Below are positions 2,390-58,676 of a stretch of 64,000 nucleotides of DNA, piece by piece. Under the pieces are notes generated by a model, which did not search any database, had not been told where the DNA came from, and saw only the letters and a list, made by a program, of their open reading frames with translations. Position 1 is the stretch's first letter, and the number at the start of each line of letters is the position of its first letter. The position numbers were made by a program, and so were the translations under genes. The stretch is taken from the IMG/VR virus record IMGVR_UViG_3300050120_000152, positions 124,001 through 188,000 of that record. One strand, 5' to 3'.

Positions 2390-2459
2390 GTAGAAGTCTT
2401 CTAAGCAGGATATACCCCATCGAGGGGTAAGATATTGGTATCGAATCCAAAATTCTACG
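2390..2459 (+). ncRNA. degenerate tRNA-like RNA (loop CAUCGAG)
   Basis: Acceptor GTAGAAG/ATTCTAC, stem TACCC/GGGTA, 8-nt T-loop TATCGAAT; lacks U33. Confidence 0.5.
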
Positions 2460-2465
2460 CCTAAT

Positions 2466-4009: not shown

Positions 4010-4065
4010 GCCTGCCAGTGGCTTACGAGCCACGTTCCATCCGGAGAAGGGTGGGGTGGGCACCA
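4010..4065 (+). ncRNA. D-armless 56-nt tRNA-like RNA
   Basis: GCCTGCC/GGTGGGC-A-CCA; GTGGC-TTACGA-GCCAC; CCATCC-GGAGAA-GGGTGG. Confidence 0.65.
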
Positions 4066-4745: not shown

Positions 4746-4925
4746 ATGAAAATTTATAAAATAGAATCGGGTGACACATTAAGTCAGCTTGCAAAATACT
4801 TTGATGTTTCGTTATCTGCTATCATGTTTGTTAATCCAACATTAATCAATGCTGACAATATTATTGCAGGAGATTGGCTTTACATTCCTACTATTCTTCA
4901 TCATGCTCTTGAAAAGACGTATTGA
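4746..4925 (+). CDS. stand-alone LysM domain protein (59 aa, below ORF-track cutoff)
   Basis: MKIYKIESGDTLSQLAKYFDVSLSAIMFVNPTLINADNIIAGDWLYIP is a textbook LysM pattern. Confidence 0.85.
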   Translation: MKIYKIESGDTLSQLAKYFDVSLSAIMFVNPTLINADNIIAGDWLYIPTILHHALEKTY

Positions 4926-7507: not shown

Positions 7508-7624
7508 ACGTACATAGCTCAGTCTGGGAGAGCAGCCCCGTAGGAGGGGTAAGTTAAATCAATTTGACGTTTAGGCGTTGCAATGCGATACTGGTCGGTG
7601 GTTCGAATCCATCTGTGCGTACCA
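7508..7624 (+). ncRNA. expanded tRNA-like RNA (Pro-like D arm)
   Basis: ACGTACA/TGTGCGT-A-CCA; GCCCC-GTAGGA-GGGGT; 46-nt two-hairpin variable region; canonical T arm. Confidence 0.7.
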
Positions 7625-28450: not shown

Positions 28451-28540
28451 TGGCGGGAGTAGTGGGAGTCGAACCCACGACGTTTAACATTAAATGCATG
28501 GATTTAGAATCCACCGCTCTGACCACTGAGCTATACTCCC
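28451..28540 (-). tRNA. amber suppressor tRNA (anticodon CTA)
   Basis: GGGAGTA/TACTCCC-G-CCA; GTGGA-TTCTAAA-TCCAT; 19-nt variable region; canonical D and T arms. Confidence 0.88.
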
Positions 28541-40523: not shown

Positions 40524-40608
40524 GGCCTCTTGGCGAAACTGGCATACGCGCTTTCCTTAAGAGTAAGTACCTTCGGGTATGCGGGTTCGACTCCCGCAGA
40601 GGCCACCA
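40524..40608 (+). tRNA. trnL: tRNA-Leu(TAA)
   Basis: GGCCTCT/AGAGGCC, loop CTTAAGA, TACC-TTCG-GGTA arm, A73, CCA. Confidence 0.92.
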
Positions 40609-40609
40609 A

Positions 40610-41080
40610 TTATTTGTTTTTATTTTTACCTCTATATGTCAAAGTTTTTGTATGACAATTTGGACATAATAAAGTTAAATTTTCAAGTTTATTATTAGCA
40701 TGATTACCATCAATATGTTCTAATTCTAATGGTATGGGATCACCAAGCCATTCAGTTAAATTACAATTGTAACATTTATGCTGGAAAATTCCTTCAGATA
40801 TAAGTCGTAGTCTAAGACGATTACTATTTACATATTGAACATTTCCTGACAGAATATCAGTCATAGCTATTACAGGTCTTGGAGGATAAGTTTTTCCTTT
40901 AGCATAACCTTGACCTGTGAAATGTGATATATCAATATCATGTTCCTTAAATCGTTTTTGTATGGTAGAATAGTTGCTTCCGTATGGATTCAATTCAAGT
41001 TTTCGTAATACTTCAGCAATAGAAAAAGAATCTTTGACAGCTTCACGCAATTGTTCTGGGGTATGTTTAAAGTTTGACAT
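40610..41080 (-). CDS. HNH homing endonuclease
   Basis: CYNC..LELEHIDGNHANNKLENLTLLCPNCHTKT; late promoter at 41104. Confidence 0.9.
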   Translation of the reverse strand: MSNFKHTPEQLREAVKDSFSIAEVLRKLELNPYGSNYSTIQKRFKEHDIDISHFTGQGYAKGKTYPPRPVIAMTDILSGNVQYVNSNRLRLRLISEGIFQHKCYNCNLTEWLGDPIPLELEHIDGNHANNKLENLTLLCPNCHTKTLTYRGKNKNK

Positions 41081-41179
41081 AGTAACACTCTCTGTAATAT
41101 ACCTATTTATATGTATTACAAAGTTATGAATAAAAAGATTGACAAGTGATATAAATAACAAATATAATTACTACCTTGT

Positions 41180-41321
41180 GGGCGTATGGGGGAATTGGTA
41201 GACCCGGCAGACTCATTGAAGTCTTCTAGAAATAGAAGATTTTGTAAAATAAATTTAATAGTTTATTTTACAAAATCTGCTTCCGAAAGGAGTCCCGGTT
41301 CAAGTCCGGGTATGCCTACCA
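41180..41321 (+). tRNA. trnL: tRNA-Leu(CAA) split by a 57-nt insert (41215-41271)
   Basis: Removing the insert gives an 85-nt Leu cloverleaf with GCAGA-CTCAAAA-TCTGC. Confidence 0.85.
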
Positions 41322-41449: not shown

Positions 41450-41788
41450 ATTCAAATTAAATGTTGACAATGACGTTTAATAATGTATAATTAGCTACAT
41501 GTAGTGGAACTCGTGACTCTGGTCACGTAAAGGATTGAAGCGAGAGCTTCTAAGGACTTGGAAATAGGGTATCGAATCCCTGCACCCCATGAGGGGGTGT
41601 TCGTCTAAGATAGGACACCAAGATTGCATTAGAAGGTAGCCATTCTGGATGAATGGAGAAAATAACACGAGGCGTCAACTGTACACGCCTACTCGCAAAG
41701 CTAGACATTAGTAAAAATGCACTCGCAAAGTTTTAAAAGTGTTGACAAAGAATAGAAACATGGTATTCTAGTTAACTCAGCAAGACAC

Positions 41789-41863
41789 GGGGAAGTACCT
41801 CAGAGACTAGAGGACTGGCATATGAGCCAGAAGTCGTAGGTTCAATCCCTACCTTCCCCACCA
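41789..41863 (+). ncRNA. tRNA with a 6-nt anticodon loop (AUAUGA)
   Basis: Perfect cloverleaf GGGGAAG/CTTCCCC-A-CCA, but CTGGC-ATATGA-GCCAG. Confidence 0.75.
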
Positions 41864-41866
41864 AAT

Positions 41867-43690
41867 TAAGATGGTGTAAAATCAGCGCAGAGTTGATCAC
41901 CTAGATGATAAGGGCTTACAGAACTGTTATAGGTTCTACACATATCATCCATCTTATAATAAAGCATGTGGATGAGTTTCCCGAAAGGGTTGTGAGTCGC
42001 CAGTCCAGAATTACGAATGGGCCGTTATACTAGACTAACGGAATTACCACTGACGATAATCGTTTGCTACGATTTGAAACATTCTTAGGAATGTATGGTA
42101 TAGCACCTTGAAGGCGAAAGTTTTCATGGTCAGGATAAGGTATCGCAAGATGCTAAAAGGGTTTGCGCCCACAAGCGCCCCACCATAGTAATATGGCCCA
42201 ACTATACAAGCTGGTAGGACACTAAGCGGAATGCTTAGGATTCATCATATGGTGGATATAGATCAGCACTCAATGGTAACGAAAACCACATTAGAGCCAA
42301 TCGGTGAAATGTGAGAGGTTTAGCAGCCTCTAGTTACATGCAACATTGGCCTGAAGTATGTTAAACCGGTAGTGGTTCCAGTATGAGGGTTTGCGCCTAA
42401 ATGCGAAGCTGCAATGTTAATGGGTGCGAACGCTCATGAAACATACTGTGAATGTATCCTTAGCGGGAGAAAAGCAGAGAAGGTCGGGTTTGAAGCTGTC
42501 GGGATGGAGAAAGTTTCATTAATAGCATTTCGCTACACATCCTTTTAGATAAATACATATATCTAGGAGATTGTGAATGAATTTTTGTCATTACGGTTGT
42601 GGAAAAGAAGGTCTGTTCTATTCTGAATCATCAAAGCGTTGGAGATGTTGCAAAAATCCAGCATTATGTGATGGTAGGAAACGTGAAGTCAGTACAATGA
42701 ATATAAATGGAGAGTCCCATAAAAGACTCAAAATGAAGTATAAAAATTGTCCTGAATGTGGGTTGAAGGTATCTGCACCAACATTAGCAGCACATGTACG
42801 TAAATGTACACGAAAACTTACTTGCATAGTATGTGGCAGTGAACATAAGCGTGATCAGGCAATAACATGTTCTGATAAATGTCGTAGTATATTAACTTCT
42901 GAAACAATAAGAGGACAATATGCTGATGGTAGTAGATCACCTAGAAAAGCCAAGAAAACGTCTGTAATATATGACGAACACGTTTTTGATAATGATGTAG
43001 AAGTTCTAGCATACAAATTGTTAGTTTCAATGAAAGTTGACAACTTGCAGCATGAAAGTGTTAGAATTCCATATGTCTATGAAGGATTAGACCATACATA
43101 TTTTCCTGATTTTACTTACGATGATGGTAACCAAAAATGTTTGGTTGAAATCAAAGCTGGTGGTAGAATGAACATGAGCAATTATGCTAAACTGCGCGCC
43201 GCTGAATCGTTAGGATATAAAATCATACTGTGGGATAGAAATGTTATTAAGAAGCTTTCTTCTAATAAAGACTGATGGACAAACGAACCTGCTCGACCTT
43301 AGTGGGTAAACTAGCCTTGATTGGCACTTTGAATATTATCAAAATAACGAAAAATGCAAAGTCAGGTTCGGTTACAGTTGAAAATAGCATAATGCTCCAC
43401 CGAAAGGAATGGAGTCATGCAAAAGCTCGCAAGGCTAATGTATGTTGGTAAAGAACTGCAAGTATGGGTGTAGCCACCCTTAGCTGCTCGCAAGGCAGGC
43501 TGAATGGGAAATGCCGAATAGACTGTAGCGACAATGGAAACGCCACCATTTAAAATAAGGCTGCTATGATGATGTACATATTTGTGGTCGAAAGACTAGA
43601 GTATGTGGACAAGTCGGGAAAAGGCTCGCAAAGCCCTATAATCCGCACGAAAGCATTATCACGAAGAGTGTAATCTCAACTCGACATATT
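41867..43690 (+). ncRNA. giant ornate ncRNA (GOLLD-like), about 1.1 kb, interrupted by an ORF
   Basis: About 680 nt + 410 nt ORF-free, more than 20 hairpins, many with GAAA/GCAA loops; starts directly after a tRNA; ends GAGT-GTAATCTCA-ACTC. Confidence 0.6.
42577..43275 (+). CDS. zinc-finger plus PD-(D/E)xK endonuclease (TnsA-N-like), putative homing endonuclease
   Basis: CxxC motifs; YFPDF..LVEIKAG; ATAAATA and AGGAG upstream. Confidence 0.75.
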   Translation: MNFCHYGCGKEGLFYSESSKRWRCCKNPALCDGRKREVSTMNINGESHKRLKMKYKNCPECGLKVSAPTLAAHVRKCTRKLTCIVCGSEHKRDQAITCSDKCRSILTSETIRGQYADGSRSPRKAKKTSVIYDEHVFDNDVEVLAYKLLVSMKVDNLQHESVRIPYVYEGLDHTYFPDFTYDDGNQKCLVEIKAGGRMNMSNYAKLRAAESLGYKIILWDRNVIKKLSSNKD

Positions 43691-49098: not shown

Positions 49099-51488
49099 TC
49101 ATGGCTCATAATTTTCGTTATACAGTGCGGCATGAATTTAGCTATGGAGAGGAACAGTATATCTTCGATTCCCCCATTTTGTTGTTAAGGTATTATGATG
49201 ACTTGGAACAGCAATTGGCACTGGCGAAAGTTCTAGGCATCAATTATGAACCAAATCGCGGGGAATACTTGATTATCGAACTGCAACCTAACATTGTGGA
49301 AAAAGTATTGACATTGGATGAAGTCAATACTATTCTTGATGCTGGTCAATAATTTTAACAATCACTAAAACTAAGGAAAAACTATATCATGGCAATCAAA
49401 GCAGTTACTCGTTACCAATCCGAAGATGGAAAGCTTCATGATGATATTGTGGAAGCTCGCTCGTATGATTCCGTTCAACGCGCTTTGACAGGCGTAAAAG
49501 CAGCCATTCTGACCGCATCACCGAATCATATGCTGGGCAATCTCCCGCTTGATCTGGTGAACAATCCGAAGCATGCTGAACTGCTGCGTGATGCTCTGAA
49601 TGCTGTACTGAATAGTCACCGCCACTATGGCAAACTGCGTAAGAATAAGCCTGCGCAGACTGCTACAAAAGTCTGAAATACTGCTTGACAAGCATTAATT
49701 GTTGGAATAAACTTTAAATATCATCATAAAGGCAATCAAATGCACGATTCCACAAATTCTGATTCTATCACCGACTATGCTTCCAATTCGGTAGCAGCTA
49801 CACTTATTTCATCCAAAAATCAAATCCGTCGAATGTATCCCACGGTTTTGCTGGATGAGCATCCTGATGCTATTCTGCCGATCATTTTGGATCGCACCGT
49901 ACATAGCATGATTCATCTGGATCAGAAATTTGATATGAATTCGATTTTCGATCAAGATCATTTCAACAAGATGAAAGCTGAAGCATTTATCCATCTGGCA
50001 TGGCTTAATACGCCGGATAATACGCCATATCCAGAATCATTGAAATACTCCTCCACCAGTGTTTCATCTGATGAAGATGATGAAACCGTTGTAGTAGTTC
50101 CCAAGGTGGCTCCAGCAGCAAAAGTCACAACCGTTGCCGATGTTGCCAAAAATCGCATAATCAGCAAAAATTCAAAGTTCCAAAAAGCATTGCTTATCTA
50201 TACAGAAGATCAGGCCAGCCATGCCAATCGTGCAGCAACATTGCGCCGCATGATTACAGAACTGGAGATGAATCCAAGTACAGCAAATGTGTACTATAGT
50301 AAGTTCAAGAATCCAGTATCACTCCAGAAGTAAAGCTGAAGATAGGCTGAATCAAGTTAAGATTAACTGCACCATCCGAAAATAAGTCTTGCAATTCGTA
50401 ACAAAGCGTGTAGAATGTAAAACACTGGAACGATCCAGTATCACCTAACCCAACACCAACTCACAACAAAGGAAATACGATCATGGCAAAGCGCGAACCT
50501 GCGGTAACTTTCAAGGGCACGATGGCCGAACTGACCAGCAAGCTCACCCTCAACGGCAAGAAGCTCTCCCAGCCGTTTCTCTCCCAGCTTGTCACCTACG
50601 GCTTGTCGGCGTCTGTCGTTGCCAAGCAGCCCAACTCGGTTGGCAAGGGCAAGCCGACCAATATCGTGGAAGTCACCAGCGGCAAGGGTCACATCTTCGC
50701 TGAAATCGTGGCGGATGCGGCGGCTGAGCATGTCGATGCTTCTGCTTCGACCGAAGTGACCGCGTAATACATCTGCTGCAAGAATATCAGAAAGCCCTAG
50801 CCATAGTCTAGGGCTTTCTTTTTGATAAATATATTTCAACGGAGATAGTCTATGTGCCTTGTACGCCTTGATAACCATGTTGAAAGTGTGAACCAGATTA
50901 TTGCAGGGTTGGAAGCGGGAACCCGAACTCTAACCAGTCTGCAAGTCGCTATGCTGCTGCGTGAGCTTGACGAAGCGTTACAGGCATGTCAGGGTAGCCC
51001 TATCCTTACGCATGCGTTAGGACTTAATCCAAGCATGGTAAGCTAACCATAAAGAATATGCATCATTCTGTTACTTTGCTTATTGCAAAGATTTCCTAAA
51101 AGGAATATAATGATTGCACTAGAGGATTCACCATGATTAACCTACTTGTCAAACATGATACTGCCCACAAAGTATGGCACAAGCTCAGTGTAGGCTTTCC
51201 TGACCGTGCTGCATTACCTGATAACATGGAAGGTCTAGCAGGATCATGCTGGCAGTTTGCCATGCAATACGCTATTGACCATCAAATGAACCGTGACCTC
51301 ATTGCATTCCGTATCGTTGACAAGAATGATTCTGTCATCTATGAATACGTTTCAAATGCAACCATGAATGCCGACACTACTGGCATCAAAACCTATCAGC
51401 GTTTCTTAACATCTGTTTAACCTTCCCTTAACAATTCGTAAGGTCACCAGTCCCAACACCATACCATGAAAATCTTTGTTGTCAACAC

Positions 51489-56772: not shown

Positions 56773-56890
56773 GGGTTTGTACGCAGATGGCATAGCGGCT
56801 GTACAGTAAGGCCAGTGTGGCAACATTGTTGCCGATTATTATCGAGTTGATCGGTTCTAATCTTCGTGGGTTCGAATCCCTCCCTGCCCA
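56773..56890 (+). ncRNA. expanded tRNA-like RNA (Tyr-like, loop CAGUAAG)
   Basis: D arm CGC/GCG, 50-nt variable region with hairpins, T arm GTGGG-TTCGAAT-CCCTC; weak acceptor stem. Confidence 0.55.
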
Positions 56891-57147
56891 TTCAAAATGC
56901 TTGACATGCACCATTCAAGTTGTATAATAATCACATGGAAAACGAAACCAAACTTGTGATGTGCGATGTGGGCAGCTGCCGTAATGAGTTGCCAATCGAA
57001 CAGATGAACAGTGAATCCAGCAATGGTGAAACATGGTATGCTTGCCCTGATTGTGTGGACAAGGTTCAGAACAGGTCTGGTTATTGTTCGCTCCAATGTC
57101 AATACACGGGATTCTGTGACGATAGTTGCTGAAGTAATGAGTTAATA

Positions 57148-57703: not shown

Positions 57704-57809
57704 GGGTCGGTAGCTCAGTTGGTAGAGCAGGAGACTTATTCAAGTATCTTCAATGAGGATACTTCTATTAATCTCTTGGTCGCGGGTTCGAACCCCGCCC
57801 GACCCACCA
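57704..57809 (+). tRNA. trnK: tRNA-Lys(TTT) split by a 30-nt insert (57738-57767)
   Basis: Body resembles enterobacterial tRNA-Lys; removing the insert gives 76 nt with loop CTTTTAA. Confidence 0.88.
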
Positions 57810-58183: not shown

Positions 58184-58676
58184 CAAGGTTTCATCCCTGA
58201 TACAACAACCGGGAATGTAAGGATACTATAATTTTCGGAATATGTCAAGATGCTCATACCATCCGCTGACGTAAGTTATCAGGACTTTTTGTGATATACC
58301 CTTGTGAAGCCGTGGTGTACTGGTTTAGGGTATATTGCAAAAAGGTGTTGACAAGCTGCAATGGTGTTGTATAATACAATTACACAATCGAGAGCTTTAG
58401 CGGTAACAGAATCGACTGTGGGGATGTGCACGGAGCGGCAACGTGTTCACGTTGTGATGTGATAAGGATATAGGACAGTAGGATAACAGAATAAACCCTG
58501 ATTGATTCGCGAGTCAACATGAATAAACCTGTTAGAGTATTGTTACAATCTGAATCATATTGTGGGTTCGAATCCCACCATCCTCCTCGCTAAAGGTAGC
58601 CATTCTGATGAATGGAGAAAATAACACGAGGCACATATGCGCGCCTACTCGATTAACCATCATTTGGCAAAAAGAG

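Follow-up and report, generated by a model that had tools for sequence, protein, structure and literature searches.

The DNA analysed here (the window) is a stretch of 64,000 nt, bases 124001-188000 of one 340,344 bp contig (G+C 34.7%) that is classed in IMG/VR (record IMGVR_UViG_3300050120_000152) as a complete virus with direct terminal repeats. The phage sequence was recovered in public runs from three peat metagenome studies, with zero differences among the contigs, and its proteins share only 35-40% amino acid identity with those of Rak2/CBB/GAP32-like jumbo phages, which are distant kin (megablast and tblastn against GenBank phages). ARAGORN finds 39 tRNA genes and one tmRNA in the genome, with 14 of these tRNA genes in the window. 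All told, this jumbo phage has about 50 tRNA genes, and at least ten of its tRNA-like genes are aberrant. Three of them, at 41789-41863, 7508-7624 and 4010-4065, share a set of letters in the loop that takes the place of an anticodon loop, and are the subject of this analysis; each is referred to by its first coordinate, and features are collected in Table 1.

Element 41789 is a near-ideal cloverleaf of 75 nt, with an acceptor stem of 7 bp, a D stem of 4 bp and anticodon and T stems of 5 bp each; every one of the 21 pairs is Watson-Crick. The T-loop is canonical (UUCAAUC), and A73 and CCA are encoded, while the D-loop (AGAGACUA) is without G18G19. The minimum free energy (MFE) fold has an energy of -30.3 kcal/mol (z = -3.6), and the match to the Rfam tRNA model (RF00005) scores 54.1 bits against a threshold of 29. 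ARAGORN calls a tRNA here and gives it a loop of 6 nt with an 'anticodon' of 2 nt, and the Rfam alignment places four residues where the model has five, with a U aligned to U33. The loop with its closing pair reads CAUAUGAG, i.e., ctggCATATGAGccag, with the C at 41819 (direct reading and script), and the closing C-G pair has a probability of 0.998 in a partition-function fold of the whole element. A candidate promoter precedes the gene; this call, like that for element 2390, is a consensus match only, and promoter-like sites in the 41789 region do not exceed the count in shuffled sequence. Body similarity gave no clear answer on the isotype of 41789 after the anticodon arm was masked, and the unmasked ranking, which favoured Ile(UAU), was biased by how the comparison database had been gathered.

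Element 7508 is a longer cloverleaf (117 nt), with a 46-nt variable region that holds two hairpins. Its D-arm is canonical and includes GG, the T-arm and T-loop are canonical, the acceptor stem is ACGUACA/UGUGCGU followed by A73-CCA, and the cloverleaf stems are complete, two G-U pairs included. It is not called by ARAGORN and has no Rfam match even at E <= 10. The loop with its closing pair reads CGUAGGAG, i.e., gcccCGTAGGAGgggt, with the C at 7539 (direct reading and script), and the closing C-G pair again has a probability of 0.998 (whole-element partition-function fold). When only the body is compared, tRNA-Ile ranks first; the possible triplets, UAG or AGG, are neither of them an Ile anticodon and would read Leu or Pro codons. 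Relatives of the open reading frame (ORF) adjoining this element were looked for and none was found.

Element 4010 is far smaller. An acceptor stem of 7 bp is followed by 1 nt, hairpin 1, 3 nt, hairpin 2 (6 bp and the loop GGAGAA) and A73-CCA. Both G18G19 and the T-loop consensus are absent, hairpin 2 presenting a 6-nt 'T-loop', and there is no Rfam tRNA match even at E <= 10. The MFE fold (-29.9 kcal/mol, z = -3.05) makes up 82% of the ensemble. In hairpin 1 the loop with its closing pair reads CUUACGAG, i.e., gtggCTTACGAGccac, with the C at 4022 (direct reading and script); the closing C-G pair has p > 0.99, and an inner U-A pair (p = 0.85) would turn the arm into 6 bp and a UACG tetraloop.

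Table 1. Features of the three elements, of their comparators and of the surrounding RNA island (window coordinates unless stated otherwise).
Feature	Position	Strand	Basis or description
tRNA-like gene (41789)	41789-41863	+	ARAGORN; Rfam tRNA; MFE cloverleaf
Anticodon-arm equivalent of 41789	41815-41830	+	CUGGC / AUAUGA / GCCAG; loop 41820-41825
Candidate sigma-70-like promoter	41742-41769	+	TTGACA, 16-nt spacer, TATTCT, TG present; some 20 nt ahead of the 41789 gene
tRNA-like gene, Ile-type body (7508)	7508-7624	+	sequence, fold, body-only comparison
Anticodon-arm equivalent of 7508	7535-7550	+	GCCCC / GUAGGA / GGGGU; loop 7540-7545
56-nt mini tRNA-like RNA, D-armless (4010)	4010-4065	+	fold; starts 10 nt past tRNA-Ser(UGA)
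Hairpin 1 of 4010	4018-4033	+	GUGGC / UUACGA / GCCAC; more likely GUGGCU-UACG-AGCCAC
Canonical tRNA-Leu(UAA)	40524-40608	+	arm C-CUUAAGA-G; letters U-A-N-G-A-G in a normal 7-nt loop; in-genome comparator
Aberrant tRNA-like gene (2390)	2390-2462	+	5-nt loop; 8-nt T-loop UAUCGAAU; candidate promoter TTGACA/TATACT upstream
Weak tRNA-like element (56773)	56773-56893	+	CAGUAAG, not stem-closed
tRNA genes with unique 30-75-nt hairpin insertions in the anticodon loop	41175-41321, 57704-57809; genome 119831-119985, 319035-319160		
Paralogous non-coding RNA family	41498-41700, 58386-58640; L140 1895-1935; L152 15722-15900		
HNH endonuclease gene	40610-41161	-	inserted between tRNA-Leu(UAA) and tRNA-Leu(CAA)
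GOLLD RNA	Rfam match 43267-43682; region 41900-43682		
TilS-like PP-loop ATPase	genome 109281-109769		outside the window
CCA-adding-family enzyme	genome 77544-77903		outside the window
AAA_33 kinase	genome 68851-69291		outside the window
tmRNA	genome 89769-90200		outside the window

The first-pass annotation of this DNA had pointed out the letters C-N-U-A-N-G-A-G in these three RNAs, and they are present in each of them, beginning at 41819, 7539 and 4022. They are also set in bodies as unrelated as had been claimed: one is a cloverleaf of 75 nt, another a cloverleaf of 117 nt whose variable region spans 46 nt, and the third a mini-tRNA of 56 nt without a D-arm. Two loop sizes had been proposed, of which the 6-nt loop on a 5-bp stem agrees with the folds and the 8-nt loop on a 4-bp stem does not, the closing C-G pair having a probability of 0.998-0.999. 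All three loops are six-membered or smaller, and there is no seven-base loop with U33 and a purine at position 37. The hallmarks of pseudogenes (lost stem pairing, lost processing signals) are absent, as stems, A73 and CCA are intact in three of three and the loops alone deviate. Two further elements had been said to carry C-A-NNN-A-G loops. Element 2390 does so (ACCCC-AUCGA-GGGGU, i.e., C-A-UCG-A-G); element 56773 has the letters CAGUAAG but no closed 7-nt loop, since no stem flanks them in that register, and RNAfold gives GGCU, a 9-nt loop and GGCC instead.

A scan of IMG/VR for the motif at the correct spacing from a T-loop and CCA returned at least 118 stretches. The matches listed number 123, of which 81 have a paired T-stem and acceptor partner, and essentially all of these 81 pair canonically, with C32, U33, a UAN anticodon, G37-A38 and G39. 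Their ARAGORN identities, among the matches listed, are Ile(UAU) in 37 cases, Leu(UAG) in 33, Leu(UAA) in nine and Val(UAC) in two. The six-base-loop register accounts for a single, dubious match among those listed. The expected enrichment of the motif among phage tRNA-like RNAs was thus not borne out, nearly all of the IMG/VR matches listed having canonical 7-nt loops. With these canonical viral NUA readers (Ile-UAU, Leu-UAG, Leu-UAA and Val-UAC; CUUANGA and G39) the three phage elements share the 3' letters U-A-N-G-A-G, a C four or five bases upstream, an encoded CCA and an equal distance to the T-arm. In the NUA readers the loop has seven bases, C32 and U33 among them; in the phage elements it is one base shorter, the former C32 is paired to G39, and A, G or U stands at position 33. 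Put differently, the three loops carry the 3' stacked side of an NUA-reader loop, with one base in place of C32-U33. If the tRNA-Leu(UAA) of the window is counted in, A, U, G and C are all represented at the variable loop base. Many contigs in the scan (IMG/VR loci L025-L138) have 76-77-nt 'class I' tRNA-Leu(UAG) genes with the loop CUUAGGA, in which a Leu-type D-arm is combined with a variable loop of only 5 nt.

Six-base loops are found in other viral tRNAs, where they make up about 0.6% of 796 viral tRNAs in the sample drawn from the same scan, which is biased towards NUA readers. Four nearly identical contigs (L044, L065, L107 and L120) have a CUGUAG loop on a class II body, contig L036 has a GCGAAA loop, and a relative of the phage has an AUCAAA loop (L152, positions 4752-4843; class II body, arm GCGCA-AUCAAA-UGCGU, weak acceptor stem). 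These tRNAs are likewise one base short and lie in phage tRNA arrays, including that of the related 295-kb contig (L152), but they differ from the three elements in their loop sequences and closing pairs, and the copy in the relative has a weak acceptor stem. The NUANGA motif is absent from all three of these other kinds. To judge from these sequences, six-base-loop tRNAs recur, though with other loop sequences.

The suggestion that the recurrence reflects a selected motif holds in part, in that the sharing exceeds simple chance models; genome-wide enrichment was not seen. Hairpins of 5 bp closing C.TA.GAG number five in the genome against 3.0 +/- 1.9 in shuffles, and three of the five occupy the anticodon-arm position of tRNA-like genes. 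Six-base-loop hairpins of the NUANGA type (30 observed, 36.5 +/- 6.8 expected) and of the RUAKGR type (21 observed, 13.3 +/- 4.6 expected) are not enriched genome-wide, and a dispersed operator family was rejected on these counts. One further ATATGA hairpin lies within a coding region at genome position 120263. Among the 38 seven-base-loop tRNA calls of the genome, only one combines U34-A35, G37-A38 and C31-G39; at such own-genome base rates the occurrence of this combination in three of three six-base loops has a nominal probability of about 1e-3 to 1e-5, a rough figure for a motif defined post hoc with n = 3.

Comparison with relatives concerns mainly the surroundings of the elements. A 1.9-kb contig from ENA (L140) is syntenic with the window and encodes a SprT-like protein with 69% identity; its order is tRNA-Leu(UAA), no HNH gene, tRNA-Leu(CAA) and the start of an RNA resembling that at 41498, and it stops about 300 nt short of the expected position of 41789. 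Two loci of a 295-kb ENA contig (L148 and L152) share SprT, DUF8296, DUF488, Rnl1 and the GOLLD RNA with the window. The tRNA-Leu(CAA) of L140 lacks the 57-nt insertion of the window copy (41175-41321), as does the orthologue in L148, and tRNA sets differ at syntenic places in L143-L147 and in L148/L152. Because the insertion is missing from both orthologues, an HNH gene has been inserted here and the tRNA sets differ, the comparison shows that tRNA genes turn over quickly in this phage group. Other probes met with little. An exact 16-mer of the 41789 arm gave 20 matches in IMG/VR, all of them non-tRNA chance hits, and the 3' halves of 41789, 7508 and 4010 gave none there, nor did Rnl1 peptides. 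The T-arm and acceptor 20-mer of 41789 had no match in GTDB genomes, and in one JGI metagenome scan a 20-mer common to the window and L140 hit two contigs, both unrelated.

Taken together, the three elements are probably tRNA mimics or decaying tRNA copies without normal decoding, and not designed frameshift suppressors. We tentatively propose, as plausible though somewhat short of probable, that they are non-decoding tRNA-derived RNAs whose common letters are those of one type of NUA-reader loop contracted by one base. All three would then be tRNA-derived genes of a jumbo phage, and would belong with the other aberrant tRNA-like genes, at least ten in all, of its RNA island. They have kept the features required for tRNA-like production and handling (acceptor stem, T-arm or T-arm-like hairpin, A73 and CCA, with the candidate promoter in the case of 41789). 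Because the loop is a tightly closed six-base loop (a tetraloop in 4010), they lack a normal seven-base U-turn anticodon loop and would act as non-decoding or, at best, decoding-impaired tRNA mimics. C-N-U-A-N-G-A-G would be the remnant of an NUA-reader loop C32-U33-U34-A35-N36-G37-A38 closed by 31-39, in which the former C32 would now pair with G39 because the loop has one base fewer on its 5' side. NUA codons make up 9.3% of all codons (243 long ORFs), so that NUA readers would be the likeliest multi-copy tRNAs of such an A+T-rich phage. A loss of decoding is favoured because the Ile-like body of 7508 is at odds with its Leu or Pro triplets, 41789 is without the D-loop GG, and canonical tRNAs for UUA, CUA and GUA are already encoded in the phage genome. 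Further support comes from the many other tRNA-like genes with altered anticodon regions, from the acceptor/T module conserved in L152 with a compensatory change, from the quick turnover of tRNA genes and from the enzymes of tRNA handling that the phage encodes. As for a present role, the RNAs may serve as decoys or sponges for tRNA-binding host factors, as processing or stability modules, or have none. The T4 species 1 and 2 RNAs and the TMER modules of gammaherpesvirus 68 are tRNA-shaped RNAs that are co-expressed and co-processed with tRNAs and do not decode. The phage elements resemble them in their tRNA shape, and those RNAs are not known to share a six-base-loop motif.

Several points weigh against this proposal. 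Orthologues of 41789, 7508 and 4010 were not found in any collection searched (IMG/VR, GTDB, JGI and the ENA relatives), so neither conservation nor decay of the three elements can be shown, and the public runs that hold the phage, three peat runs, consist of DNA contigs only. For two of the three, descent from a single loop type would call for a further change, in which A or G replaced U33. On paper, an equally good fit is the register N32-U33-A34-N35-G36-A37, where the missing base would lie 3' of the anticodon; the CU-GUA-G and AU-CAA-A loops of the six-base-loop tRNAs elsewhere suggest this second register, and the Rfam alignment of 41789, with its U at U33, agrees with it. The stems of 41789 are all perfect Watson-Crick, unlike what long neutral decay would predict. 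Lastly, U-A-x-G-A with C-G closure in three of three is improbable for ancestors that were random tRNAs (one in 38 at the base rate), which leaves room for selection on the motif itself.

Such selection is the substance of an unlikely but real alternative, in which C(NUANGA)G, a six-base loop carried by a tRNA scaffold, would be a protein or nuclease recognition loop, a decoy or an operator-like site. It would explain why the closing pair and four of the six loop positions are common to three unrelated bodies, and would suit the fully intact stems and candidate own promoter of 41789. The operator of the PP7 coat protein reportedly has the consensus R-U-A-K-G-R, and AUAUGA and GUAGGA fit such a 6-nt loop, with an unpaired A26 on the 5' side in both elements. 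The PP7 operator hairpin itself has the loop AUAUGG and a bulged A 4 bp below it (PMC4894952), so the likeness lies in a loop of six bases that starts with AUAUG or GUAGG and in a purine left unpaired on the 5' side of the stem. Here, however, the purine lies 5 bp and not 4 bp from the loop; the UUACGA of 4010 falls outside the consensus and probably closes to a tetraloop; and this is a double-stranded DNA phage, with no Levi_coat homologue in the genome (E <= 1) and no known binding partner. Phage tRNAs have been proposed to counter host anticodon nucleases, which substitutions in the anticodon loop would help them to evade (PMC10264068), but those substitutions are in 7-nt loops of functional decoders, whereas it is loop length that has changed in the present elements. 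Recognition of the loop also fits poorly with the lack of genome-wide enrichment of either hairpin type and with the absence of the motif from the six-base-loop tRNAs of other viral contigs and of the relative. An extended version, in which tRNA-shaped RNAs with a closed R/U-U-A-N-G-A loop would have been built deliberately as decoys or adaptors for a loop-specific host or phage protein, within a conserved non-decoding programme around GOLLD, is rather unlikely. Three other loop types were considered, a CsrA/RsmE-type GGA loop, a T-loop (U-N-N-R-A) and a UNCG-type tetraloop, and none fits all three loops.

The motif might instead be coincidental, with the elements plain pseudogenes that arose by three independent recent one-base deletions, or unrelated look-alike hairpins. 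Rapid tRNA turnover in the phage group, homing endonucleases among the tRNA genes, the visibly decayed acceptor stem of the six-base-loop tRNA in the relative, and the expectation of about three such hairpins per genome by chance (for a post hoc motif with n = 3) all speak for this; yet perfect or near-perfect acceptor stems with CCA in all three, the compact and very stable design of 4010 (not that of a decayed cloverleaf), and the low joint probability of loop letters and closing pair at own-genome base rates make it unlikely. Six-membered anticodon loops are generally poor decoders, which counts against a further possibility, that these are working decoders with contracted loops, reading NUA codons (anticodons UAU, UAG, UAC, with G37-A38) or CNU codons (AUG, AGG, ACG, with A34). 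NUA codons are abundant, and CAU, CCU and CGU are the preferred synonymous codons in the phage; the 3' five loop bases are identical to the stacked side of the canonical viral NUA readers, CCA, A73 and intact stems are present, and all four nucleotides occur at the middle or third base once the canonical Leu(UAA) or Leu(AAG) is counted in. UUA, CUA and GUA already have canonical tRNAs, however, and AUA could be served by CAU-type tRNAs with the TilS-like enzyme, while the Ile-like 7508 would read Leu or Pro codons, 4010 is without a D-arm and has a 6-nt 'T-loop' off consensus, and 41789 lacks G18G19, so that decoding is improbable. Least credible, to the point of being very nearly dismissed, is the frameshift-suppressor or quadruplet design suggested in the first-pass annotation, in which 8-nt loops on 4-bp stems would read UAUG, UAGG and UACG. 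Frameshift-suppressor tRNAs of the sufD/sufJ type have expanded anticodon loops, and in them too the loop length departs from seven. The letters can formally be written C32-N33-NNNN-A37-G38, and natural 8-nt anticodon loops exist, e.g., in yeast mitochondrial tRNA-Thr(UAG) (PMC7609411). But expanded-loop tRNAs have open 8-nt loops with U33, and here a C-G pair with p > 0.99 would have to be opened, which would place A (41789), G (7508) and U (4010) at position 33, leaving two of the three without U33; the 'loop' of 4010 is moreover a UACG tetraloop hairpin in an RNA that has no D-arm and forms no cloverleaf.

Phage tRNA arrays are usually viewed only as devices for codon supply or against nucleases. 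The phage described here is a complete 340-kb genome with a large set of tRNA-shaped genes that are unfit as ordinary decoders, among them genes with loops of six or five bases, a mini-tRNA that has no D-arm and anticodon loops into which hairpins are inserted, beside GOLLD and enzymes of tRNA repair and modification. Should selection maintain even a part of these RNAs, they would represent natural tRNA mimicry by a DNA phage and offer a route to the function of GOLLD-associated RNA islands; if they are relics, they would record a fast decay of phage tRNAs and explain 'undetermined' tRNAs in annotation pipelines.

The GOLLD RNA of the window scores 149.7 bits, marginally below the Rfam threshold of 150. 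Its gene is apparently split by an ORF for a 232-aa endonuclease (42577-43275), as two parts (42088-42499 and 43350-43680) align to an uninterrupted GOLLD in L148 (4763-4354 and 4235-3904), and the gap between them is 851 nt here against 119 nt in L148. Several HNH and GIY-YIG endonuclease genes are interspersed with the tRNA genes of the window; the DNA of the HNH gene at 40610-41161 shares 73-77% identity with HNH genes from T5-like and Rak2-like phages. The window encodes an RNA ligase of the T4 Rnl1 type, and the genome outside it a CCA-adding-family enzyme, an AAA_33 kinase and a TilS-like PP-loop ATPase, from which it appears that the phage invests in tRNA handling; no RtcB was found encoded in the phage genome. 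A well-formed tRNA with anticodon CUA (an amber suppressor) lies at 28451-28540 on the minus strand, labelled 'Pyl' by ARAGORN and scoring 66 bits with the Rfam tRNA model.

Many other aberrant tRNA-like genes have kept their acceptor and T arms, and their anticodon regions are altered by insertions of 57, 30, about 75 and about 65 nt or by 5-nt loops; one lacks the D-arm. The insertions, of 30-75 nt, are far too short to be group I introns, and their sequences are not repeated, so that repeated mobile elements were also rejected. With an Rnl1-type ligase and a kinase among the phage proteins, protein-dependent splicing of the inserted tRNAs is conceivable. Element 2390 has no Rfam tRNA match even at E <= 10; its eight-base T-loop variant (G-UAUCGAAU-C, with an extra A after T54; 2436-2452) recurs at 41566-41582 in an otherwise different element.

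The paralogous non-coding RNAs at 41498 and 58386 share a layout in which a candidate promoter and a 5' motif (CGAGAGCUU) are followed by a tRNA-like acceptor/T-arm module that lacks CCA, then by a hairpin and finally by a 3' motif (AACACGAGGC). Conserved copies of the family occur in two relatives, and the acceptor stem shows a compensatory change. The tRNA-like RNA at 58386-58590 has its homologue in L152, in which a double change from G-C to A-U keeps the acceptor stem paired and the anticodon region is completely different. At the level of sequence comparison, acceptor/T modules are thus seen to be maintained in this phage group even where no decoding loop goes with them. In L152 (15755-15833) the loop is GAUUAAA (with a UUA 'ochre' triplet and A33), and in the homologue at 58386 about 120 nt replace this arm.

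Two genes outside the window were overlooked by ARAGORN (genome 318331-318426 and 318786-318861), a tRNA-Tyr(GUA) with a normal CUGUAAA loop and a 76-nt tRNA-like gene whose anticodon arm forms a long hairpin ending in a tiny loop. The output of a permissive tRNA-like finder written for this analysis was mostly noise. A compact, stable RNA at 50599-50660 (-28.9 kcal/mol, z = -2.6) has a 7-bp acceptor-like pairing and ACCA in its sequence; its MFE fold has an overlapping 6-bp terminal stem instead, and it is possibly a second mini tRNA-like element.

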